A stretch of 64,000 nt of DNA, taken from the sequence record NC_048048.2. The stretch is one strand, 5' to 3'. The notes below the pieces were generated by a model, which saw only the letters and a program-made list of their open reading frames with translations, searched no databases and was not told where the DNA came from. Positions 31,708 through 51,606 of this stretch are shown in pieces. Position 1 is the first letter of the stretch, and the number at the start of each line of letters is the position of its first letter. Position numbers and translations under genes: made by a program.

Positions 31708-31839
31708 GGGCGCGCCTCACCAGCAAAAATCAGCAGTTCAATCCAGTTGTTGACTATAAGCATAGAATAAAGACTAGGCTCCGAGCCCCAGCAAACACTG
31801 GGCCGGGGCCTATTTGCTGCGCCCAGGGCTGCGCGCCGC

Positions 31840-32140
31840 ACACCACCTTCCCCCAGAAAGCTAGACGCATATATTGTAGATTAAAAGACGAGCATAAAGG
31901 CTAGGGCAGGAGGGCTGAACACCACCTTCCCCCAGAAAGCTAGACACACATATTGTCGATTAAACGTAGAACATAAAGGCTAATGGGATGCAGGCCCATC
32001 TGTGGGACACAGGGCTTGCCCCAGAAAGCTAGACACACATATTGTCATCTAAACGTATAGCATAAAGGCTAATGCACCTCACACCATACAGGGCATAGGC
32101 TGTGCCTTTCAATGAACCACACTACCATTTAGCCTTTATC
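31840..32140. repeat. AT-rich region with three imperfect 55-64 bp direct repeats (candidate origin)
   Basis: CCCCAGAAAGCTAGAC..ATATTGT..TAAA..CATAAAGGCTA at about 31840, 31919 and 32019; inverted TAGCCTTTAT near 32130. Confidence 0.8.
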
Positions 32141-32516
32141 TTCTACTTATAAATAACAATATTCTCACTCTATGGGGTAAGGAAAATAGGAATCTAGTAT
32201 AGAAGAGAGTAGTAGGGATTGTGCAGCGTATGGTTGTATGGTTGCCAGATCGAATGGGCGTCAGGGAGACACGGAAGAGGCCCGCTCCGCGTAGGACGAC
32301 ACTGAGGGGTCGGTTTGAACTTCCGCTGAAATGCGCACTCAGACTGCTCAAATTCGGTAATCCCTAAACCGGGGACGGTCGACACCAGAAGACGCGACCG
32401 GCGAAGGAGGGCGCAGCCCGAGTGAGGTGGGAGGCGTAGCAAACCTATGGACCTCTGCTTCCCAACCATAGGACCTCCTGGTTCAAACCTCTGGACCTCC
32501 TGGCGTAGCGACGCTC

Positions 32517-32561
32517 GAAGATGGAGGCCCTGAAGATGGCGGCCCTGAAGATGGAGGCCCG
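32517..32561. repeat. 3 x 15-bp tandem repeat
   Basis: GAAGATGG(A/C)GGCCC(T/G) three times. Confidence 0.85.
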
Positions 32562-32702
32562 ACCGGCGATCGAGGCGCAGCCGAGGAGACGGGATGGGAT
32601 GGGAAAGGATTCATGACCCGATGTCGCGTTTCTTGACGTGTGTCACGTGACGTGTCATGAAGGTTACCGAAGATGGTTAATGCGCCATCCAAGGACCACC
32701 CG

Positions 32703-33428
32703 ATGTTCACCTCCATCCGCGCCGCCGATCCGCAAGACCCGCGTCCCCAACTGACGGACGAGGCCACCCTGCGCGCGGCGATCGCCACCACCCTGCCGCT
32801 CTACGTGGCCCTGGCCAAGACGCGCGGCGCCGATCTCGTCGGCGACCAGATCAGCTTCGCCCTCGAAGTGGCCTTGAAGAAGGCGCGCACCTCTGACGGC
32901 GACTGGGCCTGGAACGCCGCGCGGCTGATGGAGGACGCCTTCGGTCTGCCGGGCGATGGCAAGCTGCTCGCCCTGGTCGAGACGACCATCGCCCGGCTGA
33001 AGATCGAGTGGGAGAGCCTGACCCGCGCCTGGGTCATGCGCACCGGCTACCGCATCCCCGCCGCGCTCGACGAGAAGGTCGAGGCCGTGGTCAATGGGGT
33101 TCCGGTGGTGGGCAAGATCGTCGGCGTCTCTCGCGCGCTCGGCGTGGCCTACATGGACAACGAGGCCCACACCGAGACCTACCGCATCGACGGCGAGGAC
33201 ATCATCGCCAACTACACCCAGGGCCGCTTCTCGCCCGAGACCCCGGTCCTGGGCTCGCGCTACGAGGACGCCCCCGCGCTCGCCGCTGCGGCCGAAGCCG
33301 CCCGAGGCAAGACCCGCAAGCTGCCGGCCGCGCCGTCCGATGATGCGGCCTCGCGTCAGCAGCGCATCGCCGACGCCTATCGCAATGGCTCGTTCGGCGC
33401 TGATCTCGACGGACCCGGAGCGGCCTGA
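32703..33428 (+). CDS. hypothetical protein
   Basis: AAGGA SD before ATG 32703. Confidence 0.8.
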   Translation: MFTSIRAADPQDPRPQLTDEATLRAAIATTLPLYVALAKTRGADLVGDQISFALEVALKKARTSDGDWAWNAARLMEDAFGLPGDGKLLALVETTIARLKIEWESLTRAWVMRTGYRIPAALDEKVEAVVNGVPVVGKIVGVSRALGVAYMDNEAHTETYRIDGEDIIANYTQGRFSPETPVLGSRYEDAPALAAAAEAARGKTRKLPAAPSDDAASRQQRIADAYRNGSFGADLDGPGAA

Positions 33429-33547
33429 TGATCGACACCAACACCTTCCTGTTCAGCATGGGCATGATGGCCGCCGTGGTCATCGCCCTGACCCTGCTGA
33501 TCCGCGTCGCCGACGCCCGCTACGACTATGAGCGGGGTGTCAAGTGA
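33428..33547 (+). CDS. 39-aa single-TM peptide
   Basis: MIDTNTFLFSMGMMAAVVIALTLLIRV...; TGATG overlap. Confidence 0.7.
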   Translation: MIDTNTFLFSMGMMAAVVIALTLLIRVADARYDYERGVK

Positions 33548-33642
33548 TCGGCCTGACCTTCCTGGCCGTGCTGGCCTTCGGGGCCTTCTTCCTGTGGCTG
33601 CTGGGCTTCGACTTCGAGTTCACCGGACCGGACGCCGCCTGA
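33544..33642 (+). CDS. 32-aa single-TM peptide
   Basis: MIGLTFLAVLAFGAFFLWLLGF...; GTGA overlap. Confidence 0.65.
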   Translation: MIGLTFLAVLAFGAFFLWLLGFDFEFTGPDAA

Positions 33643-33800
33643 TGGACACCCTTGGCCTCATCCTGCTGCTGATCGTCGCGGTGCTGATCCTCGCCATCGC
33701 GCTCGGCTTCTGGGCCACCATCGCCCTGGTCAACATCCTGGCCAAGGAGGTGCGCGTGGTCATCGCCGACCAGCGCCATCTTCCCAAGGAGGCCTCGTGA
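33642..33800 (+). CDS. 52-aa TM peptide
   Basis: MDTLGLILLLIVAVLILAIALGFW...; TGATG overlap. Confidence 0.7.
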   Translation: MDTLGLILLLIVAVLILAIALGFWATIALVNILAKEVRVVIADQRHLPKEAS

Positions 33801-33946
33801 TCAACGCCCTCCTGATCCTGGCCATCCTGTGCCTGGGGCCGTTCGCCCTCCTGGCGGCGATCCTGCTGTTTTCGGCCCTGTTCTCCTGGGCGGCCTTCCG
33901 CCACGCCGACGTGCAGAAGACCCTGACCGTCAAGGTGGGGCCGTAA
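33797..33946 (+). CDS. 49-aa TM peptide
   Basis: AGGAGG SD; MINALLILAILCLGPFALLAAILLFS... Confidence 0.7.
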   Translation: MINALLILAILCLGPFALLAAILLFSALFSWAAFRHADVQKTLTVKVGP

Positions 33947-33947
33947 G

Positions 33948-34136
33948 ATGGAAGTCCTGGCCCTGATGGGCGCGATCCTTGGCGTGGCCTTCGCCCTGCT
34001 GTTTGGCGCGGCGGCCGTCTATCTGGCCCTGCTGCTGGGCGCGATCGTGCTGGGCTTCCTGGCCCTGTTCATTTCCGGGTTCGCCATGATGGTCGACGAG
34101 ATCGTCGACATGGTGCGCGACCACTACCGCCGGTGA
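33948..34136 (+). CDS. 62-aa two-TM peptide
   Basis: MEVLALMGAILGVAFALLFG... Confidence 0.7.
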   Translation: MEVLALMGAILGVAFALLFGAAAVYLALLLGAIVLGFLALFISGFAMMVDEIVDMVRDHYRR

Positions 34137-34210
34137 GCATCGTCACGGCCCTGATGGCCGCGTCGCTGATCGCCATCCTCTACCACCTCAAGCCGGGCGC
34201 GCACCGATGA
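34133..34210 (+). CDS. 25-aa TM peptide
   Basis: MSIVTALMAASLIAILYHLKPGAHR; overlaps at both ends. Confidence 0.55.
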   Translation: MSIVTALMAASLIAILYHLKPGAHR

Positions 34211-34377
34211 GCACCTTCCTGCAAGTCTCCCTGGTCCTGGCCGGCGTCCTGATGGTCATCGGCCTGTCCTGGGCCATGGGCCATTTCGAGGAGTTCATGC
34301 GCGGCTCCCTGGGCGCCCCGGAGCTTCCGGCCCACGACCTGCCCGATGAACCCGAGTTCGGATCGGAGCGTCCGTGA
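34207..34377 (+). CDS. 56-aa TM peptide
   Basis: MSTFLQVSLVLAGVLMVIGLSW...; ATGA overlap. Confidence 0.7.
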   Translation: MSTFLQVSLVLAGVLMVIGLSWAMGHFEEFMRGSLGAPELPAHDLPDEPEFGSERP

Positions 34378-34460
34378 CGGAGATCATCTTCCCCGCCTGC
34401 GTGGCGCTGGCCCTGGTCATCGCGATCTTCCGCCTGATCGACCACTACGACGGGACCTGA
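34374..34460 (+). CDS. 28-aa TM peptide
   Basis: MTEIIFPACVALALVIAIFRLIDHYDGT; GGAG SD, GTGA overlap. Confidence 0.6.
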   Translation: MTEIIFPACVALALVIAIFRLIDHYDGT

Positions 34461-34465
34461 CGTCC

Positions 34466-34537
34466 GTGAGCCTGCTTCTCGTCGCCGCCTTCATCGTCTG
34501 GCTGGCCTACGCCGCCGCCCGCAATCTTCGAGTCTGA
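34466..34537 (+). CDS. 23-aa TM peptide
   Basis: MSLLLVAAFIVWLAYAAARNLRV. Confidence 0.55.
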   Translation: MSLLLVAAFIVWLAYAAARNLRV

Positions 34538-34541
34538 TCCG

Positions 34542-34700
34542 ATGACCTATTTCGCTCTCGTCCTGGCCCTGTCGCTGGTCAACACCGGCGCCCAGATCAC
34601 CACCGCCTATCGCAACTGCGAGGAAGGTCAGGTCGCCTGGGGCGTTATCCTGGCCCTGGCCCAGGCCATCGCCCTGGCCGTCTACAAGGCGCCCGCATGA
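34542..34700 (+). CDS. 52-aa two-TM peptide
   Basis: MTYFALVLALSLVN...WGVILALAQAIALAVY. Confidence 0.65.
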   Translation: MTYFALVLALSLVNTGAQITTAYRNCEEGQVAWGVILALAQAIALAVYKAPA

Positions 34701-34876
34701 CCGGCTTTGTCGTCACCCTGCTGATCACCGCGATCGTCTATCACGCCCTGATCCTGCGCGATGTCTTCTGCGAGTTCTCGCGCGACGAGGGCCAGCAGCT
34801 TTTCCACGGCGTCGCCGCCGGCCTGCTGCTGATGTTCGAGATCGTCGCCGTCGGTAGCCTCTGGATGGGCAAGTAA
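34697..34876 (+). CDS. 59-aa two-TM peptide
   Basis: MTGFVVTLLITAIVY...GLLLMFEIVAVGSLW; ATGA overlap. Confidence 0.7.
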   Translation: MTGFVVTLLITAIVYHALILRDVFCEFSRDEGQQLFHGVAAGLLLMFEIVAVGSLWMGK

Positions 34877-34879
34877 GCC

Positions 34880-35089
34880 ATGGCGCTCGCCTACGTCCTC
34901 GCCGACATTCTGGCCATCGCCGCCGGCGTCTATGGTGCGATCACCGGCGCCGTCTGCACCATGGACGATACGCTCAATCGTGAGCACAGCCTGCTGGTCG
35001 GCCTGTGGGTCCTGATCTGCCTGGGTTCGGCGACCATCGCCGCCCTGGGCGTGGTCGATCTGGTCATGAGGCTGCCGCCCGCGTCATGA
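34880..35089 (+). CDS. 69-aa two-TM peptide
   Basis: MALAYVLADILAIAAGVY...LLVGLWVLICLG. Confidence 0.7.
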   Translation: MALAYVLADILAIAAGVYGAITGAVCTMDDTLNREHSLLVGLWVLICLGSATIAALGVVDLVMRLPPAS

Positions 35090-35111
35090 CCCGTATCTCG
35101 GCCGCTTTGTC

Positions 35112-35303
35112 GTGGAGCCTTCCGTCGTGAGTGTGGCGGCAGCAGGCGCGGTGGGGGCTTACGCCGCCCAGCGTATGCGTGAGGGAGGCTACCCGCCTCT
35201 CGCGCCCATGACCCGCGCCGAGAAGTGGGGTCTCGTAGGGGAGGCTGTGGTCATCGTCATGATCTTCGCCGCCCTGGCCTGGGTCTACAGTCTGGGGTCC
35301 TGA
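35112..35303 (+). CDS. TM peptide (start uncertain)
   Basis: KWGLVGEAVVIVMIFAALAWVY; TGATG overlap with the resolvase gene. Confidence 0.55.
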   Translation: MEPSVVSVAAAGAVGAYAAQRMREGGYPPLAPMTRAEKWGLVGEAVVIVMIFAALAWVYSLGS

Positions 35304-35821
35304 TGTCTAGAATTCTCGGCGTCGACCCCGGCGTCAAGGGCGCCCTGGCCCTGCTCGACACCACCAACTGGACCATCGCCATCCGCGACATGCCCCTGGA
35401 GATCGGCACCAAGGGCAAGGAGAAGGTCTCCGCGCGCGGTCTGCTCGATGCGATCGCCGCCGCCAAGCCCGACGCGGCTTTCCTCGAAGAGGTCTACGCC
35501 TCGCCGCAGATGGGCGTGACCTCGGCCTTCTCGTTCGGCGACGGCTTTGGCTGCACCCGCACCGCGATCCTGGCCTATGGCTGCGTCCTTTGGCCGATCC
35601 GTCCCCAGGTGTGGAAGGCGGCCATGAAGGTCCCCAAGGACAAGAAGCAGGCCACCACCCGCGCCAGCCAGCTTGTCCCGGCCGCCCACGGCCTGTTCTT
35701 CGGCCCGCGCGGCGGCGCCTTCGATGGCCGAGCCGAAGCTGCGCTCCTGGCCCTCTATGGCTGCTTCCACCTGAAATCCACGCCCCCCAGGCCTCTCAAG
35801 GTCGTCGAGTTCCCCGAGTAG
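35303..35821 (+). CDS. RuvC-like Holliday junction resolvase
   Basis: ILGVDPG, FLEEV, FSFG, WK, DGRAEAALLA: the RuvC D-E-D/E acidic set. Confidence 0.85.
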   Translation: MSRILGVDPGVKGALALLDTTNWTIAIRDMPLEIGTKGKEKVSARGLLDAIAAAKPDAAFLEEVYASPQMGVTSAFSFGDGFGCTRTAILAYGCVLWPIRPQVWKAAMKVPKDKKQATTRASQLVPAAHGLFFGPRGGAFDGRAEAALLALYGCFHLKSTPPRPLKVVEFPE

Positions 35822-35829
35822 TACCCAGT

Positions 35830-36339
35830 ATGACCTTTTTCACCGTCCAGCCCTACCGGGTCCGCCAGCGCAAGACGCGGCTGAAGATCAAGAGCGCCCT
35901 GGAGCGCATCGACCTGATGCCGCGCCCGCAGGCCACAGTCCACCCGTTCGCGCCCAAGAAAAAGCGCGCCCGACTGACCGGGCCATACCAACCGGTGACC
36001 GGCCATACCCGGCCCTACCAAGTGATCGGCGGCGTCCATCCGGTCTATGACGAGTGCTTCGCCACCGCCGACCACGTCTACGAGGAACCGCGCAGCCCCC
36101 AGATCGTCCCGACCGGCATCCTCGACGAGCGCGGGATCATGCTCTGCCGCGTCTCCATGCCGATCAAGCAGCAGATGGGCTTTTGCACCGGCGGCAACGC
36201 CTGGACCGGTGACTTCGACGAGGAGGTCGAGGCCCTGATGCCGGCCGACATGCTGCGCATCTCCACCGGCGGCGGCGGGGTCAGCGAGATCGACGCCTCC
36301 GAGTTCGACGAGGACTTCGACGACGAGGACGAGGACTGA
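35830..36339 (+). CDS. hypothetical protein with acidic tail
   Basis: ends SEFDEDFDDEDED. Confidence 0.75.
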   Translation: MTFFTVQPYRVRQRKTRLKIKSALERIDLMPRPQATVHPFAPKKKRARLTGPYQPVTGHTRPYQVIGGVHPVYDECFATADHVYEEPRSPQIVPTGILDERGIMLCRVSMPIKQQMGFCTGGNAWTGDFDEEVEALMPADMLRISTGGGGVSEIDASEFDEDFDDEDED

Positions 36340-36566
36340 TGGCCTATTTCAACGACCGCGATTGGCAGATGGCCGGCCTGATGCTCGCCCTGGGCATGGT
36401 CACCCTGTTCGCCATCATCGGCGCGGCTATCGGCGCCGTCGTCGCCCTGCCGTTCATGCTCTGGTACCACGACTTTTTGCCGCTGCCGGCCTTTCTGGCC
36501 GTTGGCGCCGGGGCGGGCGTGGTCTTCACCGGCGTGGCCATGCGCCCCTGGGACATCCTGGCATGA
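36339..36566 (+). CDS. two-TM membrane protein
   Basis: TGATG overlap; two hydrophobic segments. Confidence 0.7.
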   Translation: MAYFNDRDWQMAGLMLALGMVTLFAIIGAAIGAVVALPFMLWYHDFLPLPAFLAVGAGAGVVFTGVAMRPWDILA

Positions 36567-37615: not shown

Positions 37616-37765
37616 ATGGGCCAGCCCAACTTCGCTCCCAATTCGCCGCTGGTCGGCTTCAAGAAGTTCCTGCTCGGCGGCACGGCCGTCTATCGCCTCG
37701 CCATGACCGAGACCACCGTCAAGTCGGCCTATGGCGAGATCAAGGCCTGGGGCGTGCGGGGCTGA
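37616..37765 (+). CDS. 49-aa hypothetical protein
   Basis: MGQPNFAPNS...WGVRG*, coupled downstream. Confidence 0.55.
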   Translation: MGQPNFAPNSPLVGFKKFLLGGTAVYRLAMTETTVKSAYGEIKAWGVRG

Positions 37766-37914
37766 TGCGCGCGCGTCTGGCCCTCCTCCTGGCCGGGATC
37801 ACCGGCGCTCTGGTCTTGTCGCTCACCCGCCCGGTCAGCGCCAGGACCAAGCTGATCTCCCTGGCCGCGCGTCCGCCCTGGGTGGGCAGAAAGCTCCCCG
37901 CCCACACCGCCTGA
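37765..37914 (+). CDS. 49-aa protein with signal/TM segment
   Basis: MRARLALLLAGITGALVLSL; TGATG overlap. Confidence 0.5.
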   Translation: MRARLALLLAGITGALVLSLTRPVSARTKLISLAARPPWVGRKLPAHTA

Positions 37915-38001: not shown

Positions 38002-40818
38002 GTGACCCTTAGTACCCTTAAGCCCCCCGTTTCGCCCTATCCCCACGAGGAGCGCGCCAAGCGTCGCGCCGGCGTGCGCCGCATGCGCAAGCTCGCCGAG
38101 GACATCCGCGACGATCACGTCCGGGGCCGGGACCAGGACCCCCAGCGCGCCACCGCCGCCACCGCCATCACCGGCGTGTCCGAGCCCCGGCACCAAGTCG
38201 CCGTGCTGGAGCAGATCGCCGACAAAATCCAGACCGAGCACCTGGACAAGCTCTATCCGCTGGCGCGCGACGACTTCTCGGCCTTCTGCGAGGTCATCAG
38301 CCCCGAGGAGCCGCCCGAAAGCCCCTGGCACATCTGGCTGACAAATTTCCTGCAAGAGGTCGAGCTTTCGCCCGATCTCAACAAGGTCGTGCTCAACGTG
38401 CCGCCCGGCCACGCCAAGCCCCTGCACGAGGACACCCTGGTGCTGATGGGCGATGGCGCCTATCGGCCGCTCAAGGACATCGCCGTCGGCGATACGGTCT
38501 GGACCCATGCCGGCCGCGCCCGCCCCGTCACCGCCGTCCACGAGCAGGGCAAGCTTTCCACCGTCGAGATCGTCACCGAGGCCGGCCGTATCGTGCGCGC
38601 CGCCCCCGACCACCCGTTCCTGGTCAAGCTGGGGACCAGGGACGATGGGACCCCGATCGCCGAGTGGATCAACGCCGGCGACCTGCGGCCGGGCATGCCC
38701 GTGGTGCTCTCGGCCCACAAGCCGCCGAGCATTGAGCGCCTGCGCTATGACGGCGACCACACCACGCCCGAGACCTACGACAAGCACCTGCGCCGGGCCG
38801 AGGCGCTGGGCTACATGGCGCTGGGCGGCGCCCTGCACTGGCAGAAGTCCAAGACCCAGGTCACCCCCTCGCCGGACTTTAGGCTGTCGACCCACAAGCG
38901 CGCGCTGATGAAGCACATCGTCAAGCTGGTCAAGACCGGCCTTGGCCATCACATCAGCGTCTGCAAGGTCGCCTCCCAGAACACCTTCGTCGCGCGCCTG
39001 GGCGTCAAGGGCTTTCGCGATCTCAACGCCGGCGACTGGTTCACCTACGAGCCCGAAAAGCGCCGCGTCCCGCCGGTCATCTTCACGTCGAGCAAGGACG
39101 AGATCGCCGCCTTTCTGGGCGCGGCCTTCTCCCTGCGCGGCGAGGTCATCCGCCGGCTGCGCGGCAAGAACCTGCGCCTCTACCATCGCTCGATGGACCT
39201 GCTGCTGGACGTGCAGAAGTTGTGTGCGACGCTGGGGGCCACAGGAAGCCTCGACAGGGGCGATCCTGATTTTGGCGGCCGACCCTGCCTGAACCTCGAC
39301 TTCGCCGCTGTGGAGGCCCTCCAGGCGGCCGGAGTGACCTTCGACGGCGAGACCGACATCGACCTCGTCAACCAGCCGCCCTTCACCATGCTGATCCCGC
39401 GTCCGAGCGACACCGACGCGGTCGTCTCGGTGCTGCCGGCCAAGAAGGCCCGCTGCCTGTGCCTGACCGTCGAGGAGGACCACAGCTTCACGGCCGAGAC
39501 CCTGGTGGTCAAGAACTCCACCTACGCCTCGCGCCTGTTCGTGGCGTGGCGCCTGGGCCGCGATCCCAACCAGCGCATCATCGGCGGCGGCCACAGCCAG
39601 AACTTCGTCGAAAACGAGTTCTCGGCCAAAATCCGCAACATCGTCGAGAGCCCCGAGTTCCAGCGCGTCTTCCCCGGCATCACCGTCGACCACAAGACCA
39701 ACGCCAAGCAGCAGTGGGCGATCGCCGGCTACAAGGGCCAGTACGTGGCGCGCGGCGTGGGCCAGGGCATCCACGGTTTCCGCGCCACCTTCATCTGCGT
39801 CGACGACCCCTACTCCAAGATCGAGGACGCCAACAGCCCCGTCCACCGCCGCAAGGTCGAGCAGTGGTTCGACGCCGATATCGGCTCTCGCGCCCTGCCC
39901 AACTGCAAGACCTTCCTCATCATGACCCGCTTCCATGGCGAGGATTTGACTAATCACCTGGAGGAGATGAATAAGGTCCTCCCCGACAATGCAAAGTGGA
40001 AGATCGTTACTGTTCCGGCGATCTGTTTTGATGAAGAGACTGATCTTCTAGGCCGCAAGATCGGGGAATTTTTGTGGGATTACTATCCGTTGTCCTACTT
40101 TGTTGACAAGAAGATTCAGTTTGGATTTTTGGGTTTCGCCCTCACCTACCAACAGGTGTCGTCTGCCGCAAATCCCGACAACATCGCCAGCAAGTTCAAC
40201 TTCTACGATTTTCTGCCCCACGAGTCGCCTGAAGCCAAGGCCCGCGCGCCGCTCGACCAGTTCGGTCGGCCGCAGATTAACGAGAGTGATTTTTACCGGC
40301 GCACCATCGTCTCGGTCGACACCGCCTCCAAGACCACCGAACGGGCCGACTACACCGTCGTCCAGGTCTGGCGCGAGGATTTCAAGGGCAAGCACTATCT
40401 CGTCCATCAGGATCGCCGGAAGGTTGAGTTCAACGATCTGATCTCGATGATCGAGGCGCCGGCCATCAAGTACCGGGCCGATCAAATCCTTGTCGAGGAC
40501 AAGGGCTCGGGCACCCAGTACCTCCAGAACCGGGGCTCGACCGACAACCAGAAGCGTCAGGCCCCCTGCCCGCTGGTGGCGGTCAATCCGGGCGTGGCCG
40601 GCAAGAGCTTCCGCTTCGATGGGGTCACGCCGATGATCGAGGCCGGCGATGTCTGGCTGCCCAAGGACGCCCCCTGGATCGAGCAGCTTCTGGTCGAGGT
40701 GGGCCAGTTCCCCGACAGCGCCCACGATGACCAAGTCGACGCCATGAGCCAGTACCTCAACCACGCCAAGAAGAACCGCACCCGTTACGGCAGCCGCAAG
40801 ATCACCAAGCACACCTGA
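38002..40818 (+). CDS. terL: terminase large subunit, intein-containing (start uncertain)
   Basis: Walker A VPPGHAK/ST split by intein; Walker B ICVDDP; IMTRFH; nuclease SVDTAS, VEDKGSG and HDDQVDAMSQ. Confidence 0.95.
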   Translation: MTLSTLKPPVSPYPHEERAKRRAGVRRMRKLAEDIRDDHVRGRDQDPQRATAATAITGVSEPRHQVAVLEQIADKIQTEHLDKLYPLARDDFSAFCEVISPEEPPESPWHIWLTNFLQEVELSPDLNKVVLNVPPGHAKPLHEDTLVLMGDGAYRPLKDIAVGDTVWTHAGRARPVTAVHEQGKLSTVEIVTEAGRIVRAAPDHPFLVKLGTRDDGTPIAEWINAGDLRPGMPVVLSAHKPPSIERLRYDGDHTTPETYDKHLRRAEALGYMALGGALHWQKSKTQVTPSPDFRLSTHKRALMKHIVKLVKTGLGHHISVCKVASQNTFVARLGVKGFRDLNAGDWFTYEPEKRRVPPVIFTSSKDEIAAFLGAAFSLRGEVIRRLRGKNLRLYHRSMDLLLDVQKLCATLGATGSLDRGDPDFGGRPCLNLDFAAVEALQAAGVTFDGETDIDLVNQPPFTMLIPRPSDTDAVVSVLPAKKARCLCLTVEEDHSFTAETLVVKNSTYASRLFVAWRLGRDPNQRIIGGGHSQNFVENEFSAKIRNIVESPEFQRVFPGITVDHKTNAKQQWAIAGYKGQYVARGVGQGIHGFRATFICVDDPYSKIEDANSPVHRRKVEQWFDADIGSRALPNCKTFLIMTRFHGEDLTNHLEEMNKVLPDNAKWKIVTVPAICFDEETDLLGRKIGEFLWDYYPLSYFVDKKIQFGFLGFALTYQQVSSAANPDNIASKFNFYDFLPHESPEAKARAPLDQFGRPQINESDFYRRTIVSVDTASKTTERADYTVVQVWREDFKGKHYLVHQDRRKVEFNDLISMIEAPAIKYRADQILVEDKGSGTQYLQNRGSTDNQKRQAPCPLVAVNPGVAGKSFRFDGVTPMIEAGDVWLPKDAPWIEQLLVEVGQFPDSAHDDQVDAMSQYLNHAKKNRTRYGSRKITKHT
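38419..39516 (+). mobile_element. 366-aa intein with degenerate LAGLIDADG domain
   Basis: block A PLHEDTLV, block B AAPDHPF, block F RCLCLTVEEDHSF, block G VVKN/S; block C LGYMALGG and block E FLGAAFSLRG. Confidence 0.9.
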
Positions 40819-43133: not shown

Positions 43134-43360
43134 TTAAGGTTAACGGCGGATTAACCATACGGCGAGTAAGGTTAATTTTCAAGGTTAACGGGTAGGATGA
43201 ACGAACGTGGTTAACGGGCCTTAAGGTTAAATCTTAAGGTTAACAGGCGTTAAGGTTAACGCTTAGGGTGAAAAATTAAGGTTAACGCGCCCGGCCGGAC
43301 CGCCCAGGCCCTACCGGCGCCGTTAAGGTTAACGCCAGGGGTCGAATCGTTAAGGTTAAC
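43134..43360. repeat. dense TTAAGGTTAA / CtrA-type cluster
   Basis: about ten AGGTTAA/TTAAGGTTAA copies, including TTAA-N7-TTAACCAT. Confidence 0.85.
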
Positions 43361-43364
43361 ACCC

Positions 43365-43481
43365 AAAAACAGCGAAAATCAGCAAAAATCGTCCAAAAAC
43401 AGTGAAAATCAGCGAAAAATAGCGCTTTTCAGCCTGAAAATCGCAAAAAATCCGTGTTTTGGCCCATTTTTGGGTCATTTT
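43365..43481. other. helically phased A/T tracts (intrinsic bend)
   Basis: A4-6 at 43365, 43375, 43384, 43395, 43405, 43415, 43437, 43445; T tracts at 43426, 43457, 43467, 43478. Confidence 0.8.
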
Positions 43482-43550
43482 CGCGCTCTGACCCGCTTCT
43501 GGGCCAGCCCGAACGGGCGCCGGCCGGGTCGTGATCCCCCGGCCGGTGGG

Positions 43551-43613
43551 TCAGTGGAGAATCCAGAGCAACAGCGCCAGAGCCGCCAGTGACCAGCCGT
43601 TCAGCAATTTCAG
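43551..43613 (-). CDS. 20-aa hydrophobic peptide (KLL...LLWxLH family), CTG start
   Basis: (L/M)KLLNGWSLAALALLLWILH*; GAGAGG SD; similar to 53876 and 57615. Confidence 0.5.
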   Translation of the reverse strand: MKLLNGWSLAALALLLWILH

Positions 43614-43756
43614 GTGTGCGCCTCTCTCGTCTGCCGTGGCCGCTCGCCACGCTTCCTTCATCGCATACAAGAAAACTGTTGCCAAGCCCCAAAGATCGCT
43701 TGACAGCATAAAAGCCCAATGCGACAAGGGGACATCCAAACGGGAGACACCCCCCA

Positions 43757-44329
43757 ATGACCACCGAAACCCTCGACCTCCTCTATCCGGTCCTGATGCT
43801 GGAGCAGAAGATTCCCCACCGCGAAGGCATGTTGCGGCTGGCCATCGTCCTGCGCGACTTCGGCCCCAAGGCGCCCCATCGCTACGTCACCCACCTGCGG
43901 GCTGAAAACCCCGTGCCGGGCTCTGACCACGCCTTCACCTACAGCTATGAGCATGGCACCTATTCGGCCGACCTGCGCCGCGCCCTGGCCGTCTATTTCG
44001 AGCGCGTCACCGAGCGGGTCATGACCGCCATGGTCGTGCTCCACGACCTGCCCGAGGTCGCGCCGCCGGCGCCGACCGTCACCGTGCCGCTCGAACTGGC
44101 CCAGACCGCCTATGGCCTGATCGATGACAACGAACTGGACCTCTCCAAGGCCTGCGGCAACGTCACCTTGGTCGAGGCCGCCATTACCGGTCTGGCCGCC
44201 GTCCTGGGACCGCGCCGCTACTTCCGCGATGTCGAGGAAGGCAACGCCAAGCTTCTGGAGGCCTTCGAAGCCCAGCAAGCCGCGCGTGACGCGGCCCTAG
44301 AAGCCGAATCCGAAGAGGAAGAGGCCTAA
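43757..44329 (+). CDS. cassette gene, hypothetical
   Basis: GGGAGACACCCC leader. Confidence 0.8.
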   Translation: MTTETLDLLYPVLMLEQKIPHREGMLRLAIVLRDFGPKAPHRYVTHLRAENPVPGSDHAFTYSYEHGTYSADLRRALAVYFERVTERVMTAMVVLHDLPEVAPPAPTVTVPLELAQTAYGLIDDNELDLSKACGNVTLVEAAITGLAAVLGPRRYFRDVEEGNAKLLEAFEAQQAARDAALEAESEEEEA

Positions 44330-44499
44330 AAAGCCCGCCCAGGCCTCCCCGGCCTGGGCGTGAGCCCTCCAGGGGCCGTTAAGGTTAACGCCAGGGGCCG
44401 GGACGTTAAGGTTAAGGCCGAAAATAGTGCGAGAAACCTGTTGACACGCATTGCGGCCCTATGCGAGAACAAGGCTCCACTTCATGAGGAGCGCCAAGC

Positions 44500-45126
44500 A
44501 TGGCCCTGCCCGATCACTTCCTGGTTTCCGTCGACGGCTCGCTCTATGACACGCGGGTGCAAGGCTGGAACCAAGCCGCGCCGCTGCGGATCAATTACCG
44601 GATCGTCAATCGCGACATCCACGGCATGAGCGAGGTCAAGGCCGCCTTGCGCTGCGGCGCCTTTACCGACATCGGCGGCTATCCGCTGTATTTCGTCACG
44701 CAGGACGGCCGCGCCCTGTCCTTCGACAGCGCCCGCAAGATGCTCTATCAGATCGCCGACGATTTCCAGCATGGCGCCTCGACCGGCTGGCGGATCACCG
44801 GCGCCCTCATCAACTACGAGGATCACGACCTCGTCTGCGATCACAGCGGCGAGAAGATTCCGGCCGCCTATGATCCGGTGCAATGGGCCGCAGGCTGCAA
44901 TGTCTCGGGCTTCATGCCCGACAGCGAGCCTTCCCACCATGCGACCTGGGAAGAGGCCAAGGAAGACTTGCGCGCCCAGGTCGAACTGGCGCGCGAGCCC
45001 TACGAGATCGGTTCGGACGAGGACGACGCCCTAGCCCGCGTCGCCCGCGCCCTGGAGGCCCTTAAGGAAGGCCAAGAGCTTAACATGGGCGCCATCGGCT
45101 ATCGCTGGTGGGTCGAACGCCTGTAA
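44500..45126 (+). CDS. cassette gene, hypothetical
   Basis: GAGGAG SD; YPLYFVTQDG...CDHSGEKIPAAY. Confidence 0.8.
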   Translation: MALPDHFLVSVDGSLYDTRVQGWNQAAPLRINYRIVNRDIHGMSEVKAALRCGAFTDIGGYPLYFVTQDGRALSFDSARKMLYQIADDFQHGASTGWRITGALINYEDHDLVCDHSGEKIPAAYDPVQWAAGCNVSGFMPDSEPSHHATWEEAKEDLRAQVELAREPYEIGSDEDDALARVARALEALKEGQELNMGAIGYRWWVERL

Positions 45127-45147
45127 ACCAAGGAAAGGACCCCTTCC

Positions 45148-45294
45148 ATGTTCATTCTCATCGTCGGCAATCCCAGCGACGGCTTCACTTATTACGGCCC
45201 CTTCGACGAGCATGACGACGCCGTCACCTATGCCGAGGCGACCGGCACCGAGGGCAACCCCTGGTGGGTCGCGCCCCTGGAAGCGGCGGACTAG
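45148..45294 (+). CDS. 48-aa hypothetical protein
   Basis: AAGGA SD; MFILIVGNPSDGFTYYGPF. Confidence 0.7.
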   Translation: MFILIVGNPSDGFTYYGPFDEHDDAVTYAEATGTEGNPWWVAPLEAAD

Positions 45295-45300
45295 CCCGTC

Positions 45301-45435
45301 ATGACCGCTCTCGAAAAGCGCGGCTACAAGGCCGCCCAGGCGGGCGTCAAGTGGTGGAACAACCCCCACCCCAGCGGCTCCCCGGCCGCCTATCAGTGGG
45401 ACAAGGGCCACACCCGCCACCGCCTCGGACGCTAG
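45301..45435 (+). CDS. 44-aa Rmf/CrpP-like protein
   Basis: KRGYKAAQAG...NPHPSGSPAAYQWDKG. Confidence 0.6.
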   Translation: MTALEKRGYKAAQAGVKWWNNPHPSGSPAAYQWDKGHTRHRLGR

Positions 45436-45614
45436 CCGAGCCCAGGCCTTCGCGCCTGGGCTTTGCCCGCCCCCTGGGCGTTAAGGTTAAGGCCGAAAAT
45501 AGTTCAAGAAACCTGTTGACACGCATCAGGCTCCCATGCGAGAACAGGATCAGACGAAACGACAAGACCACAAAGGAGGCCGCCATGAAGTAGCGACAAT
45601 CTGGAGCACAACTC

Positions 45615-46001
45615 ATGGAATTCTTCGTCCGCACCACGCTGGTCAGCATCGCCCGCCACTGGGAGGACGGCGCCGACGTGATCGCCACCTGCTATTGCGT
45701 CTGTGTCGAGTACCCGGACGGCGCCCGCTATGTCCACGACTATCAGCCGGTCGACCGCTATGTCAGCGCCGACGACGAAGGCGAGCCCATCTATCCCTGG
45801 CGGGACGGCGAGGCCATCAAGGCCAAGCTGGACGCCTTGCGCGATGAGATCGCCGCCCACGTCGCCGCTGGCGGGAGCCTCGATCCTGGCCACTGGTTCG
45901 AGGTCGATCCGCGCTACGGCTCCCCGGCCTATATGGGCCTGGACGCCTTCGGGTTCTTCCGGGCGCGCGAAAAGCAAGAGGCCGCCGAGCGCGGCGACTG
46001 A
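45615..46001 (+). CDS. cassette gene, hypothetical
   Basis: GGAG SD; ...DPRYGSPAY. Confidence 0.8.
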   Translation: MEFFVRTTLVSIARHWEDGADVIATCYCVCVEYPDGARYVHDYQPVDRYVSADDEGEPIYPWRDGEAIKAKLDALRDEIAAHVAAGGSLDPGHWFEVDPRYGSPAYMGLDAFGFFRAREKQEAAERGD

Positions 46002-46008
46002 CACCCAA

Positions 46009-46036
46009 AAGGCCCGCCCATCCGGCGGGCCTTTTT
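46009..46036 (+). terminator. intrinsic terminator
   Basis: AAGGCCCGCC-loop-GGCGGGCCTTTTT. Confidence 0.8.
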
Positions 46037-46055
46037 CCTTGACCACCGCCTGGGG

Positions 46056-46082
46056 TTAACCTTAAGGCCGCGTTAAGGTTAA
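46056..46082. promoter_or_regulatory. extended CtrA-type box (example; exact N7 copies also near 47122, 47797, 49537, 51660, 54325, 56380, 57734, 63014)
   Basis: TTAACC-TTAA-N7-TTAA-GGTTAA. Confidence 0.8.
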
Positions 46083-46183
46083 GCCCGCCCAGGCCCGTAA
46101 AAAGATGCAAGAAACCTGTTGACACGCATGGAAGGCCTATGCGAGAACAGGGCTCAACACCAACGCCAGCCGGGAGACACCCC

Positions 46184-46774
46184 ATGGCCCTCGTCACCGA
46201 ATCCTTTGTCGTCGATCTGGCCTGCGGGCGCGCCCTGACCAACGGCGAGCGCCGCATGGTCGCCGCCGTGATCGACTCGCTTCTCGACCCGCATTTCAAG
46301 TCGACCGCCTGGGTCAAGGGCGGCGACCATCGCGAGGCCGTCCACTACTGCGACCGCGTGACGCCCTACAGCCTGCACGGCGAGAACGCCAACGCCGCGC
46401 GCGTGCGCACCGAGGCCCTGACCACCCGCGACCATGACGCCCCCGTCCTGCTGTCGCTGTCGGTCGGCGACACCATCGGCGAAATCGCCCGCTTCTACAC
46501 CATCGCCGCCGCTGTCGAATATCTCGACGGCAACCCCGATATCGATCCGACCTCGCTGCACATGGGCGCCTACACCATTGACGCCCCGTTCGGCGTGGCC
46601 AATGACATCGAGGCTGACAAGCTCCTCTATGACCTGGGCTATCGCCTGCACGCCATGGCCGGCGGGTCCTGGACCTACAGCGATCCGCAGGGCCGCCTGT
46701 GGGACGGCGGCGGCAAGCGCGAAGCCGTGGTCATGATCGCTCTGAAGCAAGCCGCCGACGCTGAAGAGGCCTAA
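46184..46774 (+). CDS. cassette gene, hypothetical
   Basis: GGGAGACACCCC leader. Confidence 0.8.
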   Translation: MALVTESFVVDLACGRALTNGERRMVAAVIDSLLDPHFKSTAWVKGGDHREAVHYCDRVTPYSLHGENANAARVRTEALTTRDHDAPVLLSLSVGDTIGEIARFYTIAAAVEYLDGNPDIDPTSLHMGAYTIDAPFGVANDIEADKLLYDLGYRLHAMAGGSWTYSDPQGRLWDGGGKREAVVMIALKQAADAEEA

Positions 46775-46779
46775 GGCCC

Positions 46780-47103
46780 GTGAAGCGCCGTCACGCCCTC
46801 TTCCTGTCGGTGATCGCTTCGGCGCCCGACGTGGTGATCCTGCAAGCTCCGGCGCACTTCCTGCGCTGGAGCGACCACCGCAAGGCCATCCTGGCGTTCA
46901 TGCGCCAGACCTACGGCGTCAAGGCCGCCGACGTTCACGCCGTCGAAGGCGTCGCCGGCTATGCCGAACCCGACCCGACCGACGACCCCGCCGTCCTGGC
47001 GCGCTTTCAAGCCGCCTTCGCCGGGTCTGACAACTTCCCCAAGGTCGCCCTGGCGGCCTGGGACGGGCAGGCCTATCGGCTGGTCCGCCGGCCTCTGGCG
47101 TGA
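46780..47103 (+). CDS. hypothetical protein
   Basis: GTG start after upstream stop. Confidence 0.65.
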   Translation: MKRRHALFLSVIASAPDVVILQAPAHFLRWSDHRKAILAFMRQTYGVKAADVHAVEGVAGYAEPDPTDDPAVLARFQAAFAGSDNFPKVALAAWDGQAYRLVRRPLA

Positions 47104-47227
47104 GGCCGCCACCGCCCAGGCTTAACCTTAACGTGGCGTTAAGGTTAAGGCCGAAAATAGTTCAAGAAAGCTGTTGACAGCATAGGAGGCTTATGCGAGA
47201 AAGGCTCATCGAAACGGGAGACACCCC

Positions 47228-47743
47228 ATGGACGACACCTATCCGCCCCTGACCCCCGGCCAGCAAGCCGCCCTGGTCGCCTTCGCCGACCAGCATGGCG
47301 GCCTGGGCGAGGCCTGGAAAGAGGCCCTGAGCGACGCCTGGAGGACGTGCAGCGAGCCCGATGCGCTCAAGGCCGACCTGCGGACCATCCGCAACACCTA
47401 TGGCCCCTCCTGGCTCTATGACGAATACGCCTGGGGCTGGCGCCCGACCCTTCCCGACTGGGAGCGCGCCGGCCGCTGGACCGACACCCCGCCGCAGCCG
47501 ACGCCGGGCAAGGCTCGCTGGAGCGCCGCCTTCGACCCGCCGGCCATCGGCGACCGGGTGCGCGTGACCACCAACGGCCTGGGCTGGGCGCGGGTCACCG
47601 GCTACTTCGTCGAAGCCGACTGGCTGGGCGTGATTGTCAAGCTGGAGGCCCCGGCCGACTGGTATGTCAAACAGAACGGCGGCAACGTCCCCGGCCACAG
47701 CTTCGGGACCGAGATCGCCCTGACCGACCCCGCGACCGACTGA
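47228..47743 (+). CDS. cassette gene, Trp-rich hypothetical with SH3-like C-terminus
   Basis: conserved leader; PAIGDRVRVTTNGLGWARV. Confidence 0.8.
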   Translation: MDDTYPPLTPGQQAALVAFADQHGGLGEAWKEALSDAWRTCSEPDALKADLRTIRNTYGPSWLYDEYAWGWRPTLPDWERAGRWTDTPPQPTPGKARWSAAFDPPAIGDRVRVTTNGLGWARVTGYFVEADWLGVIVKLEAPADWYVKQNGGNVPGHSFGTEIALTDPATD

Positions 47744-47923
47744 CCTGGACGGCCCTGGCTGGGAGACCAGCCGGGGCGAGGCCTAACCCGGCGCGGTTAA
47801 CCTTAACCGCCCATTAAGGTTAACCGCCGGCGCCCTGGGGCGGGCGAAAGAAAATGCAAGAAAACTGTTGACACGCATCTGAGGGCTATGCGAGAAAGGG
47901 CCATCGAACAACGGAGGCCCCTC

Positions 47924-48766
47924 ATGGCCAAGCTATTCAGCGACCTTCAGGACCTTGCCAACTCGACCTATGTCGTGCGCATCGTCGACAATGGCGGCCA
48001 GAGCGCCGACCGCTACACGATCGTCACCGCCGATGGCGACTATTACGCCTACAGCGCCAATCCCGCCCATCCCCAAGGCGTGGGCCTGAGCGGCGAGGGC
48101 ATCGACCCGCAAGTGCTGGTCGACTGGGTGGAGCGCGGCGAAGCCGTCGACCTGACCATCGGCGAGCTACCCGAGGCCGCCGCCCGCTGTCTGCTGGCGT
48201 CGATCAACGCCAGCGTCGAGGACTTCCTGTCGGCTGTCGAGGACCCGACCAGCAACGCCGTGGCCCCGACCCGCGAAAAGGCGGAGATCAATGACGGCGT
48301 GATGGATTGCTTCGGCAAGGGCATCTATCGCGTGGGCGAGGGTTTCGCCGTGCGCATGGATGGCCTGGACGCGGGCGATGATCGCGGCCCCTTCATGAGC
48401 GCTGTCGAGGCGGTCAAGGCCACCCTCCCCGATGAATACGCCTGGGCTGGCGAGGAATACCTGTCGCCGCGCGACATGACCAAGATCACGCCCGAAGCCA
48501 AGCCGCTCGTTCTGGTCCACGCCCTGGAGGCCATTCGCGACTATGAATATCAGCGCGACAACCCCGGCTCGTTCTTCGACGGGCTGAACGAGGACGACAC
48601 TGACGCGGGCCTGGGCATCGTGCGCCGCACGCGCTACCTGTCCAAGGTCACCGATGATGCGACCATCGTCGGGCTGATCGGCGAGGCGCCGGCCTTCGCC
48701 CTGGCCCATGAATGTCTCGACCAACTGTGGACCCTGGCGCAAGAGCGGTGGGAGGCGGGCCAGTGA
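47924..48766 (+). CDS. cassette gene, hypothetical
   Basis: GGAGG SD; RIVDNGGQSADRYTIV. Confidence 0.8.
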   Translation: MAKLFSDLQDLANSTYVVRIVDNGGQSADRYTIVTADGDYYAYSANPAHPQGVGLSGEGIDPQVLVDWVERGEAVDLTIGELPEAAARCLLASINASVEDFLSAVEDPTSNAVAPTREKAEINDGVMDCFGKGIYRVGEGFAVRMDGLDAGDDRGPFMSAVEAVKATLPDEYAWAGEEYLSPRDMTKITPEAKPLVLVHALEAIRDYEYQRDNPGSFFDGLNEDDTDAGLGIVRRTRYLSKVTDDATIVGLIGEAPAFALAHECLDQLWTLAQERWEAGQ

Positions 48767-48966
48767 GCGCCCGCGAACGCCGCGCCCTCTCCGAACTGCT
48801 GGCCCTGTTCCACGCGGTCAACAGCGGCCACGTCAAGGGCCGCAACCCCTACGCCTTCCCGGCCGTCAAGCTCGCCAACGAGGTATTGACGGGCGACCCG
48901 CTGGACGGGGTTTCCACGTCGCCGAAGCCCTGGACCGGCATCGCGAGGCGGACGGCAAGGCCTTGA
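48763..48966 (+). CDS. hypothetical protein
   Basis: GGAGG SD, GTGA overlap. Confidence 0.65.
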   Translation: MSARERRALSELLALFHAVNSGHVKGRNPYAFPAVKLANEVLTGDPLDGVSTSPKPWTGIARRTARP

Positions 48967-49070
48967 TTTTCGAGGTCGGCGGTTGCCCGGACGGCTGCTT
49001 GCTGTCCTACAGCGGCGCGGTTCCGCGCTGCGTCAACTGCGACACCGAATATCCCGAAGAAAACGGTTGA
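48963..49070 (+). CDS. 35-aa Cys-rich peptide
   Basis: TTGA overlap; GCPDGC...RCVNC. Confidence 0.45.
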   Translation: MIFEVGGCPDGCLLSYSGAVPRCVNCDTEYPEENG

Positions 49071-49121
49071 CAGCATAAGGGAGCTATGCGAGAAAGGGTC
49101 ATCAACGGAGACACCCCGCCC

Positions 49122-49262
49122 ATGTGGACCGAAAAGACCTTCAAGACCCGCGCCGCCAAGGAGGCCTGGATCGCCCGCAATGAAGACCGCTATCAGATCG
49201 TCGAGATCGTGGTCTGCAACGCCTACGGCGTGACCTACAAGCCCCTCCGACGCGTCTACTAG
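49122..49262 (+). CDS. 46-aa cassette gene
   Basis: conserved leader; MWTEKTFKTRAAKEAW. Confidence 0.75.
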   Translation: MWTEKTFKTRAAKEAWIARNEDRYQIVEIVVCNAYGVTYKPLRRVY

Positions 49263-49272
49263 GAGACCTCGC

Positions 49273-49464
49273 ATGATCCCCGACTCGGTCCGTAACCCGC
49301 AAGATCATTGGACCCCCATCGCCACCCGCGCCAAGGCTGACGCCCTGGCCTATCGCTACAACCAAGATGACGCCGGCCCCGGCCTCTACGAGGTCCACGA
49401 AAAGGGCGAAAGCTTCGCCATCGCCTACTATGACGAAGACGGCGCCTTCTGCGGCTACGTCTAA
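49273..49464 (+). CDS. 63-aa hypothetical protein
   Basis: AGGAG SD. Confidence 0.75.
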   Translation: MIPDSVRNPQDHWTPIATRAKADALAYRYNQDDAGPGLYEVHEKGESFAIAYYDEDGAFCGYV

Positions 49465-49481
49465 CCCGCTCCTGTCAACTT

Positions 49482-49518
49482 GAAGGCCGGCGCCGCTCTC
49501 CTGGCGCCGGCCTTTTTC
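49482..49518 (+). terminator. intrinsic terminator
   Basis: AAGGCCGGCGCC-loop-GGCGCCGGCCTTTTT. Confidence 0.85.
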
Positions 49519-49673
49519 TTGCCCGCCGCCTGGGTCTTAACCTTAAGGCGAGATTAAGGTTAACGCCGCCTTAAGGTTAACCGGTGCCCCGCATCCCGCC
49601 CGGATGCAAAAAACCTGTTGACACGCATTTCGACCCTATGCGAGAAAGGCGACGAACACGGGAGACACCCCTT

Positions 49674-50672: not shown

Positions 50673-50679
50673 CCCGCCC

Positions 50680-51114: not shown

Positions 51115-51164
51115 CAGCATAAGGCGGCTATGCGAGAAAGGCTCATCACTTCTGGAGCAAGCCC

Positions 51165-51374
51165 ATGGCCGCCTTCATCTGCACCGCCGATCTCAACGCC
51201 CTGGTCGAGGACATCGCCTATGACGTGGAGATGGAAGACCGCGCCGCCGAGGAACTCGACGGCCTGGACTTTGGCGACCGCTGTTACTACGGCGACCGCG
51301 CTTACCATGGCCAGCTTGAGCTTGCCCGGATCATCGAGACGGCCGTCGCCGCTCATCCCATCCTGTACGCCTAG
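51165..51374 (+). CDS. acidic 69-aa cassette gene
   Basis: GGAG SD downstream of promoter. Confidence 0.75.
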   Translation: MAAFICTADLNALVEDIAYDVEMEDRAAEELDGLDFGDRCYYGDRAYHGQLELARIIETAVAAHPILYA

Positions 51375-51390
51375 CAGAGGAGGCGCCGCT

Positions 51391-51603: not shown

Positions 51604-51606
51604 GGC

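Follow-up and report, generated by a model that had tools for sequence, protein, structure and literature searches.

An array of thirteen small genes for predicted membrane proteins in the packaging-gene block of Caulobacter phage CcrSC

Described systems of small membrane proteins and the CcrSC locus

The nearest described relatives, in form, of the gene array reported here are small membrane proteins of phage lysis, exclusion, toxicity and regulation. The array consists of 13 open reading frames (ORFs), O1 to O13, each encoding a predicted membrane protein, in Caulobacter phage CcrSC (Dolichocephalovirinae, genus Bertelyvirus; host Caulobacter vibrioides CB15). The window analysed is a 64-kb stretch that corresponds, at 100% identity, to the right end of the CcrSC genome (MH588547.2, 317,489 bp), and window positions equal record positions minus 253,489. 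The array lies at record positions 286917–288792, within the packaging-gene block and upstream of a RuvC-like gene, terS and terL.

Gordonia phages carry holin-like genes in tandem, as sets of up to four unrelated members, which were termed unprecedented (PMC9671378). As in CcrSC, these are consecutive, unrelated small transmembrane (TM) genes whose combinations vary among related phages, and one set lies in its own operon distant from the endolysin, as the array does. The Gordonia sets have at most four genes with 1–4 TM helices, occur in phages of Gram-positive hosts and are linked to lysis through homologues in lysis cassettes (PMC9671378), whereas the CcrSC array has 13 genes, lies 163 kb from the lysis cassette and has no homologues in the families, structures or bacterial genomes searched.

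Other comparisons are partial. Array members are similar in size, TM form, apparent accessory status and fast evolution to the exclusion proteins T4 Imm and Sp and HK97 gp15, which are small, accessory, fast-evolving proteins of the inner membrane that have one or two TM helices and act on host membrane machinery. Each of those proteins is encoded by a lone gene that is usually expressed early or from a prophage, and in this the array differs. No exclusion-protein match for the array ORFs was found in PHROGs or Pfam, and we know of no exclusion-protein counterpart to a 13-gene array inside a packaging operon. Hok, TisB, Ibs and Fst, and MgtS, MgtU, AcrZ and KdpF, bind larger membrane proteins or perturb the bilayer. 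Array members share with such type I toxins and small regulators a length of 20–60 amino acids (aa), one hydrophobic helix beginning close to residue 1 and a short tail carrying charge, but they are phage-borne, arrayed and without a toxin family match in NCBIfam or Pfam. Crude scans for an antisense RNA partner gave no minus-strand promoter-like site in the array and no Rfam match. Membrane-containing phages of the PRD1 type also encode many small TM proteins close together, some of which work with the packaging ATPase at the membrane. Bertelyviruses, in contrast, are tailed siphophages without an internal membrane, and the array is missing from sister genera that have the same packaging genes. 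‘Moron’-type accessory hotspots likewise combine conserved flanks with variable content (0–5 unrelated small genes elsewhere, 11–15 here). The array differs from them in that no promoter or terminator of its own was found, its base composition is not atypical, and its content is collinear and vertically inherited within the genus and is no patchwork of imports.

Thirteen coding genes with membrane character

The 13 plus-strand ORFs tile positions 33428–35303 (Table 1). An earlier sequence-only reading of the window had described them as back-to-back ORFs of 23–69 aa, each with a hydrophobic helix, lying upstream of RuvC-like, terS and terL genes with no endolysin nearby; the coordinates, sizes and gene order all agree, and the lysozyme lies at record 123 kb against 287 kb for the array. 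Nine of the ORFs were already deposited in GenBank as hypothetical proteins (gp485–gp493). The CcrSC annotation lacks O2, O6, O8 and O9; annotated orthologues occur in phages C2 (that of O9 among them), RB23 and BL47, and the four rank among the best-conserved members.

On comparative evidence from related genomes, the 13 ORFs are real coding genes under purifying selection. In its own frame, each has a GC content of 0.78–0.97 at third codon positions (GC3) and 0.32–0.53 at second positions (GC2), and the frame switches at every boundary. Phage CcrBL9 (88% DNA identity) has orthologues of O1–O12. Substitutions between the two arrays at codon positions 1, 2 and 3 number 69, 44 and 111 (chi-square p = 2e-7). 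The pooled Nei-Gojobori ratio of non-synonymous to synonymous rates (dN/dS) for this pair is 0.39 (Fisher p = 1e-10), the eight ungapped ORF pairs give 0.29 in frame versus 1.06 and 2.43 in shifted frames, and the independent pair C2 and RB23 gives 0.48 for the array; extreme GC3 constrains dS and inflates such ratios, so they are usable only relative to flanks and shifted frames. Amino acid conservation and dN/dS across relatives, which the sequence-only reading had named as a check, thus came out in favour of coding. Indels within ORFs relative to CcrBL9 are whole codons (18 nt, a multiple of three, in O7). At orthologous starts, ATG and GTG replace each other without loss of the start, and four lineages preserve ORF boundaries and stop/start overlaps.

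The genes are tightly packed. From gp484 to the RuvC-like gene, the junctions are −1, −4, −1, −4, +1, −4, −4, −4, +5, +4, −4, +3, +22 and −1 nt, with overlap at 9 of 14 and a distance of at most 5 nt at 13 of 14, in line with the mostly overlapping or 1–5-nt joins noticed earlier. Such tight overlaps are the general style of the CcrSC genome and not peculiar to the array. The proposed translational coupling is an inference from these overlaps. Several Shine-Dalgarno motifs had also been reported. With a call that required a core of 4 nt or more, suitably spaced, they were found at O1, O4 and O8 only (3 of 13 ORFs; 18 of 55 over four genomes). In Caulobacter crescentus, 24.6% of genes have a Shine-Dalgarno site and ~75% do not (PMC4117421), and the sparse sites in the array are unremarkable given this similar host norm.

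A scan for promoters and terminators inside the array found nothing usable or convincing, with an Escherichia coli-type consensus that is a poor guide to the promoters of Caulobacter or of phages. Neither Rfam nor tRNA scans gave a match in the region. The GC content of the array (0.64–0.68) is the same as that of the flanks and the genome, which, with no separate promoter or terminator seen, indicates that the array is not a recent import.

Membrane character extends to every member. The 17-residue Kyte-Doolittle maximum is 2.28–3.41 across all 13 ORFs, and 10 of the 96 other annotated coding sequences (CDS) of the window are TM-like even at a looser cutoff (maximum at least 1.9). A chain detector that joined same-strand ORFs of 20–100 aa, each TM-like, across junctions of −20 to +40 nt returned exactly the run of 13. 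The longest chain elsewhere in the window was 1 on both strands, and the antisense strand of the array gave 0. The detector covered 114 kb of the 317-kb CcrSC genome; its maximum in controls was 2 (80 metagenomic loci encoding RuvC relatives plus non-Bertelyvirus phage loci; ~0.75 Mb).

Four predicted architectures were recognized. O1, O2 and O6–O9 have a single helix from residue 1–5 followed by a short polar tail, O3–O5 contain 32–47 uncharged residues, O10–O12 are hairpins with an acidic loop, and O13 is anchored at its C-terminus. An AlphaFold2 single-sequence model of O5 has one helix at residues 2–61 (predicted local distance difference test [pLDDT] 97), which does not settle a single span versus a hairpin; the O12 model has helices at 2–27 and 32–64 (pLDDT 78). 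No basic N-region or lipobox occurs in any of the 13 ORFs. Tails are basic in O4, O6 and O9 and acidic in O2, O7 and O8, and by the positive-inside rule this difference in charge makes it likely that the peptides adopt both membrane orientations.

Table 1. Coordinates of the array and its flanking features in the 64-kb window (helices predicted)
Feature	Position	Strand	Description
AT-rich non-coding gap, ~1 kb	31708..32672	.	GC 0.42–0.52 vs ~0.66 in flanks; without annotated CDS
gp484	32703..33428	+	Upstream anchor gene (phrog_11118, function unknown); stop overlaps O1 start (TGATG)
O1 (gp485), 39 aa	33428..33547	+	One N-terminal TM helix and charged tail; family F1, in four of four lineages; GC3 0.93
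O2, 32 aa	33544..33642	+	GTG start; one TM helix and acidic tail; unannotated in CcrSC; GC3 0.94; dN/dS 0.19
O3 (gp486), 52 aa	33642..33800	+	32-residue uncharged stretch and charged tail; Kyte-Doolittle maximum 3.41
O4 (gp487), 49 aa	33797..33946	+	GTG start; AGGAGG Shine-Dalgarno; 34-residue uncharged stretch with conserved Gly-Pro turn
O5 (gp488), 62 aa	33948..34136	+	47-residue uncharged stretch (one long helix or hairpin) and charged tail
O6, 25 aa	34133..34210	+	GTG start; one TM helix and basic tail; unannotated in CcrSC; dN/dS 0.11
O7 (gp489), 56 aa	34207..34377	+	One TM helix and long acidic tail (+2/−8); family F7; 20 invariant columns
O8, 28 aa	34374..34460	+	GTG start; one TM helix and conserved polar tail; family F8; unannotated in CcrSC; dN/dS 0.11
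O9, 23 aa	34466..34537	+	GTG start (ATG in relatives); one TM helix and basic tail; family F9; unannotated in CcrSC; dN/dS 0.13
O10 (gp490), 52 aa	34542..34700	+	Two-helix hairpin, acidic loop; weak orthologue C2_11
O11 (gp491), 59 aa	34697..34876	+	Two-helix hairpin, acidic loop; CcrSC and CcrBL9 only
O12 (gp492), 69 aa	34880..35089	+	Two-helix hairpin; CcrSC and CcrBL9 only
O13 (gp493, GenBank start 35175), 56–63 aa	35112..35303	+	Small-residue N-terminal motif and C-terminal TM anchor; stop overlaps RuvC start
gp494	35303..35821	+	RuvC-like Holliday-junction resolvase (phrog_1770, E 4.8e-24); conserved downstream anchor

Members differ widely in conservation. Lineage comparisons rest on four lineages, with arrays fetched from seven Bertelyvirus genomes by using gp494 as the anchor for gathering related loci. 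Invariant columns make up 20 of 28 in O8, 17 of 23 in O9 and 14 of 39 in O1, where they are concentrated in the juxtamembrane tail. Relative to CcrBL9, O4 has 0 non-synonymous and 8 synonymous changes, O6 is 96% identical and O3 is 92% identical. The LGP motif of O4 is retained in C2 and RB23, O5 has a weak positional homologue in these two phages (C2_4/RB23_4), and the O2 orthologue was found in CcrBL9 only. O13 belongs to a family (F13) common to Bertelyvirus and Colossusvirus, with homologues C2_12, RB23_11, Colossus gp443 and CcrPW gp445 that share an invariant N-terminal motif; it is not in CcrBL9. This motif lies upstream of the GenBank start, so O13 is probably longer than annotated. 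Its start is ambiguous among GTG codons at 35112, 35127 and 35133, and 35133 is favoured because the relatives are 56 aa.

Each of the nine Bertelyvirus genomes in the phage collection has one copy of O7, O8 and O9, at the same locus. Array sizes are 13 in CcrSC, 15 in CcrBL9, 12 in C1, C2 and J4, and 11 in BL47 and RB23. The lineages compared are as low as 70–76% identical in DNA, and homology between SC-type and C2-type arrays is confined to islands at O1, O7, O8, O9 and O13. About ten positional families share one order in four lineages (F1, Fb4, F4, F5, F6 or Fc5, F7, F8, F9, F10, F13), and four to five members are strongly conserved. Turnover accompanies this order: O13 is absent from CcrBL9, the BL9_4/C2_2 family is absent from CcrSC, and C2_8 is absent from RB23. 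O10 fuses the head of BL9_12, in frame, with the final residues of BL9_13; the two are adjacent genes in CcrBL9 (locus L002, 3374–3735). The 203-nt difference is flanked by a 7-nt CCTGGCC microhomology and leaves a single intact ORF, a concrete example of member loss without a broken frame.

The members are not repeats of one another, as the sequence-only reading had also stated. In all-against-all comparison with a shuffled null, no within-genome pair was clearly above the null, and one C2 pair just reached the 99.9% threshold. Tandem duplication is unsupported because only cross-genome orthologues exceed the null.

Array dN/dS is 0.39 versus 0.195 in flanks for the CcrBL9 pair and 0.48 versus 0.12 for the C2 and RB23 pair. 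By these comparisons, protein-level evolution is two to four times faster in the array than in its flanks, and members are gained, lost, fused and replaced.

gp484 homologues adjoin RuvC in every Dolichocephalovirinae member examined. The slot between them is empty in three uncultured relatives (L011, L019 and L020) whose RuvC is 63–70% identical. In five other lineages, it holds one to five genes, all soluble apart from the O13 homologue of Colossusvirus: two genes, including this homologue, in Colossusvirus, two soluble genes in CcrRogue and one to five soluble genes in Brevundimonas phages. Content of 0, 1–5 or 11–15 genes by lineage marks the slot as a general hotspot. Its filling with micro membrane proteins is, on this distribution, a Bertelyvirus trait dating to the genus ancestor.

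Searches returned few relatives. No significant match was obtained in PHROGs or NCBIfam with O1–O10 or among PDB sequences with O5, and none at E of at most 1 in Pfam with the nine longer ORFs (O1, O3–O5, O7 and O10–O13). PADLOC anti-phage defence profiles did not match O1, O3–O5, O7, O10–O13 or gp496. An MgtU match in NCBIfam (E 0.069; 12.8 bits, far under the cutoff of 33) and a ‘lysis inhibition’ match in PHROGs (E 0.53) were rejected as noise. tblastn with O7 matched only Bertelyvirus records, at one place each, and a large-database word search with O13 returned just the phage's own shorter annotated form. Exhaustive phmmer with O12 against 1.84 billion representatives gave one clear match, a 68-aa protein with 66% identity that is consistent with the CcrBL9 orthologue; four other matches to long proteins (E 2e-5 to 2e-4) were taken as compositional. 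Degenerate DNA motifs of F8 and F9 had no match in 185,579 species genomes, and the F8 motif was found in IMG/VR in CcrSC and CcrBL9 only. phiCbK-like phages use the host pilus as their receptor; for Flp/Tad-type pilins, there was no Pfam match with the nine longer ORFs and no processing motif visible in any of the 13 sequences. As far as these searches reach, array members are genus-restricted orphans, and outside the genus only the O13 family is shared, with Colossusvirus.

Candidate roles of the array

We favour, at a probability of roughly 0.5, the reading that the array is a fast-evolving accessory set of inner-membrane micro-proteins that modulate host or competitor membrane processes. 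One transcript would run from the AT-rich gap via gp484, the array, RuvC and terS to terL, and translation would proceed largely by termination-reinitiation at overlapping stop and start codons. The products would enter the host inner membrane with no signal peptide; their helices start at residue 1–5 without a basic N-region, as in small YidC-type substrates. During infection, they would act as accessory modulators, for example, in entry exclusion, membrane energetics or membrane-bound defence, and would be neither lysis machinery nor virion parts. The short polar juxtamembrane tails are the most conserved segments and suggest specific partners at the membrane surface. The turnover seen among close relatives favours separable units. 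Several points weigh against this reading. Membrane insertion and topology are predictions from hydropathy. A dN/dS of 0.4–0.6 for several members (O1, O3, O5 and O12) indicates only mild constraint, with small per-gene counts. Co-transcription with terminase genes suits a late role better than classical early exclusion, and the genus-wide collinear order fits a co-operating set equally well as independent effectors.

The retained order and the four to five conserved members make a hetero-oligomer or core complex possible. All products, or a conserved core (F1, F4, F7, F8, F9 and F13), may form one phage-built inner-membrane assembly, such as a channel or a platform tying resolvase and terminase work to the membrane; we consider this unlikely, though less so than the remaining alternatives. 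It is consistent with the fixed order of about ten families in four lineages, a member number steady at 11–15, invariant polar tails in F8, F9 and F1, and small-residue helix-packing motifs in O5, O12 and O13. Overlapping stops and starts make equimolar co-translation plausible, and other membrane ORFs lie within the packaging operon here and in Brevundimonas phages. Members are, however, lost, fused or replaced between close relatives (O13, the BL9_4 family, C2_8 and O10), and other genera have the same packaging block without such genes, which argues that the array is not needed for packaging. Framed more broadly, the collinear families might be a multi-subunit membrane device or coordinated toolkit, specific to Bertelyvirus jumbo phages and tied to the resolvase/terminase operon, with subunits of 20–70 residues that would be co-translated from a single message; we hold this suggestion only tentatively. 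It is rather improbable that most members are young, weakly selected proto-genes in an insertion-tolerant slot, where T-rich second codon positions readily yield hydrophobic peptides, with only a few (O4, O6, O8 and O9) truly functional. The restriction of these orphans to one genus, their rapid turnover, the dN/dS above that of the flanks, at 0.4–0.6 in O1, O3, O5, O10, O11 and O12, and the unrelated small genes in the same slot of other genera all fit such an origin; yet codon phasing and GC3 are equally strong in variable and conserved members, frames are open in all lineages, the O10 fusion kept its ORF, and array size and order are stable.

A role in lysis is doubtful. The array as the phage's lysis system is ruled out by a separate cassette 163 kb away, at record 123075–124746 (locus L102, 28076–29747) after the tail genes. 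This cassette contains a soluble lysozyme (gp175), a 103-aa TM protein (gp176) that is the holin candidate, and spanin-like gp177/gp178. The i-spanin-like protein has 176 aa, with additional hydrophobic helices at its N-terminus and a C-terminal region that is long and polar, and a 73-aa o-spanin-like ORF with a Cys near its N-terminus overlaps the end of the 176-aa gene. A similar lysis cassette has been described for phiCbK-like phages (PMC3556154). A lysis-timing module of extra holins, antiholins and pinholin-like peptides that tune or back the canonical holin is improbable. With one or more TM helices and a C-terminal tail that is charged, the small array products have a holin or antiholin look that is generic to small membrane proteins, the Gordonia sets include one away from the endolysin (PMC9671378), and co-expression with late packaging genes would fit. 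Array genes have no place in or near the lysis cassette, which already has its holin candidate, and no holin family match in Pfam, PHROGs or NCBIfam; 13 genes far exceed any described lysis set, and related genera lyse without the array. Decay of one or more multi-pass membrane-protein genes by frameshifts or stops is very improbable, although such decay would be expected to leave consecutive short ORFs that switch frame along one strand and contain one or two TM helices each. Boundaries and overlaps are kept in lineages only 70–76% identical, each piece opens with a start codon at the helix head and closes in a polar tail, and purifying selection is seen in each frame. No piece matches a transporter or other family, neighbours are joined in no relative, O10 fusion aside, and among 50,697 phage records, none was found with a single long unbroken membrane-protein gene related to the pieces. 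Chance untranslated frames in GC-rich DNA are scarcely credible as an explanation: such DNA is rich in spurious ORFs, and the original annotators left four members uncalled, but on neither strand does any other chain in this GC-rich window exceed 1, selection is frame-specific and the smallest ORFs are the most conserved.

Flanking features and significance

On the plus strand, the block runs from the AT-rich gap through gp484, the 13 small ORFs, the RuvC-like resolvase, gp495–gp497, terS and two 49-aa ORFs to terL. The gap is probably an operon boundary or regulatory region at which the transcription unit of the array starts. Gaps of 0.5–1.2 kb occur in the equivalent place in Colossus, where a terminator is annotated, and in Rogue, Bajun and Kabachok; conservation of the CcrSC gap with phage C2 is limited to the last ~300 nt.

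Further small ORFs of membrane type are found downstream. gp496 (36339–36566; 75 aa), inside the packaging operon, has two or three predicted hydrophobic helices, and gp500 (37765–37914; 49 aa), between terS and terL, has a signal-like N-terminus. Brevundimonas jumbo phages have a 78–86-aa ORF between terS and terL (L099 8938–9174, L100 3538–3798 and L101 8925–9161) whose N-terminus is a hydrophobic, TM-like segment; a long charged stretch rich in Arg and Leu follows. The terL product (38002–40818) has 938 aa with sub-threshold Hint/intein matches at residues 143–505, ahead of the terminase nuclease domain. An intein is annotated in terL of Colossus and Rogue and none in the CcrSC annotation.

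Some deposited annotations differ from the sequence features. The ‘DNAase H-like’ label sits on gp495, whereas the resolvase profile matches gp494 (window 35303–36339 for the two genes). At L016 2884–2968, the reading frame used for RB23 gp483 has a GC3 of 0.46, and the true O9 orthologue lies at L016 2897–2968. The BL47 gp484 homologue is deposited as two CDS (L004 1195–2174), which fits a single frameshift or sequencing error. CtrA-box-like TTAA-N7-TTAA sites number 13 versus 0.01 expected, at 29252–63034. Twelve of the 13 lie at 43140–63034, nearly all in the terminal repeat, and none is near the array. Enrichment of CtrA sites in the terminal repeats of such phages has been published, and the CcrSC pattern agrees (PMC9437464).

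To the sequence-only reading, the array had looked like an undescribed system. No function or discussion of it was found in the literature, and the retrieved papers, including the phiCbK genomics paper, do not mention it, but nine of the 13 genes were already in the database. From the genome comparisons, what appears new is the number, collinearity and genus-wide retention of these predicted small membrane proteins; a new mechanism is not claimed.

No class of phage genes is less well understood than the small membrane proteins, and annotation routinely overlooks them (4 of 13 here). The array is an unusually clean natural case of 11–15 unrelated micro-proteins in fixed order, across nine genomes of a phage of a model bacterium with strong ribosome-profiling and membrane-biology tools. 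Its 13 members extend such gene pile-up well beyond the four termed unprecedented in Gordonia phages. The graded series from conserved 23–28-residue peptides to fast-turnover members is useful for studying how micro-proteins originate, persist and are replaced. A multi-subunit device, if real, would be a viral membrane assembly without a described counterpart in tailed phages. If members bind distinct host membrane machines or assemble together, they would provide new probes of the Caulobacter envelope.

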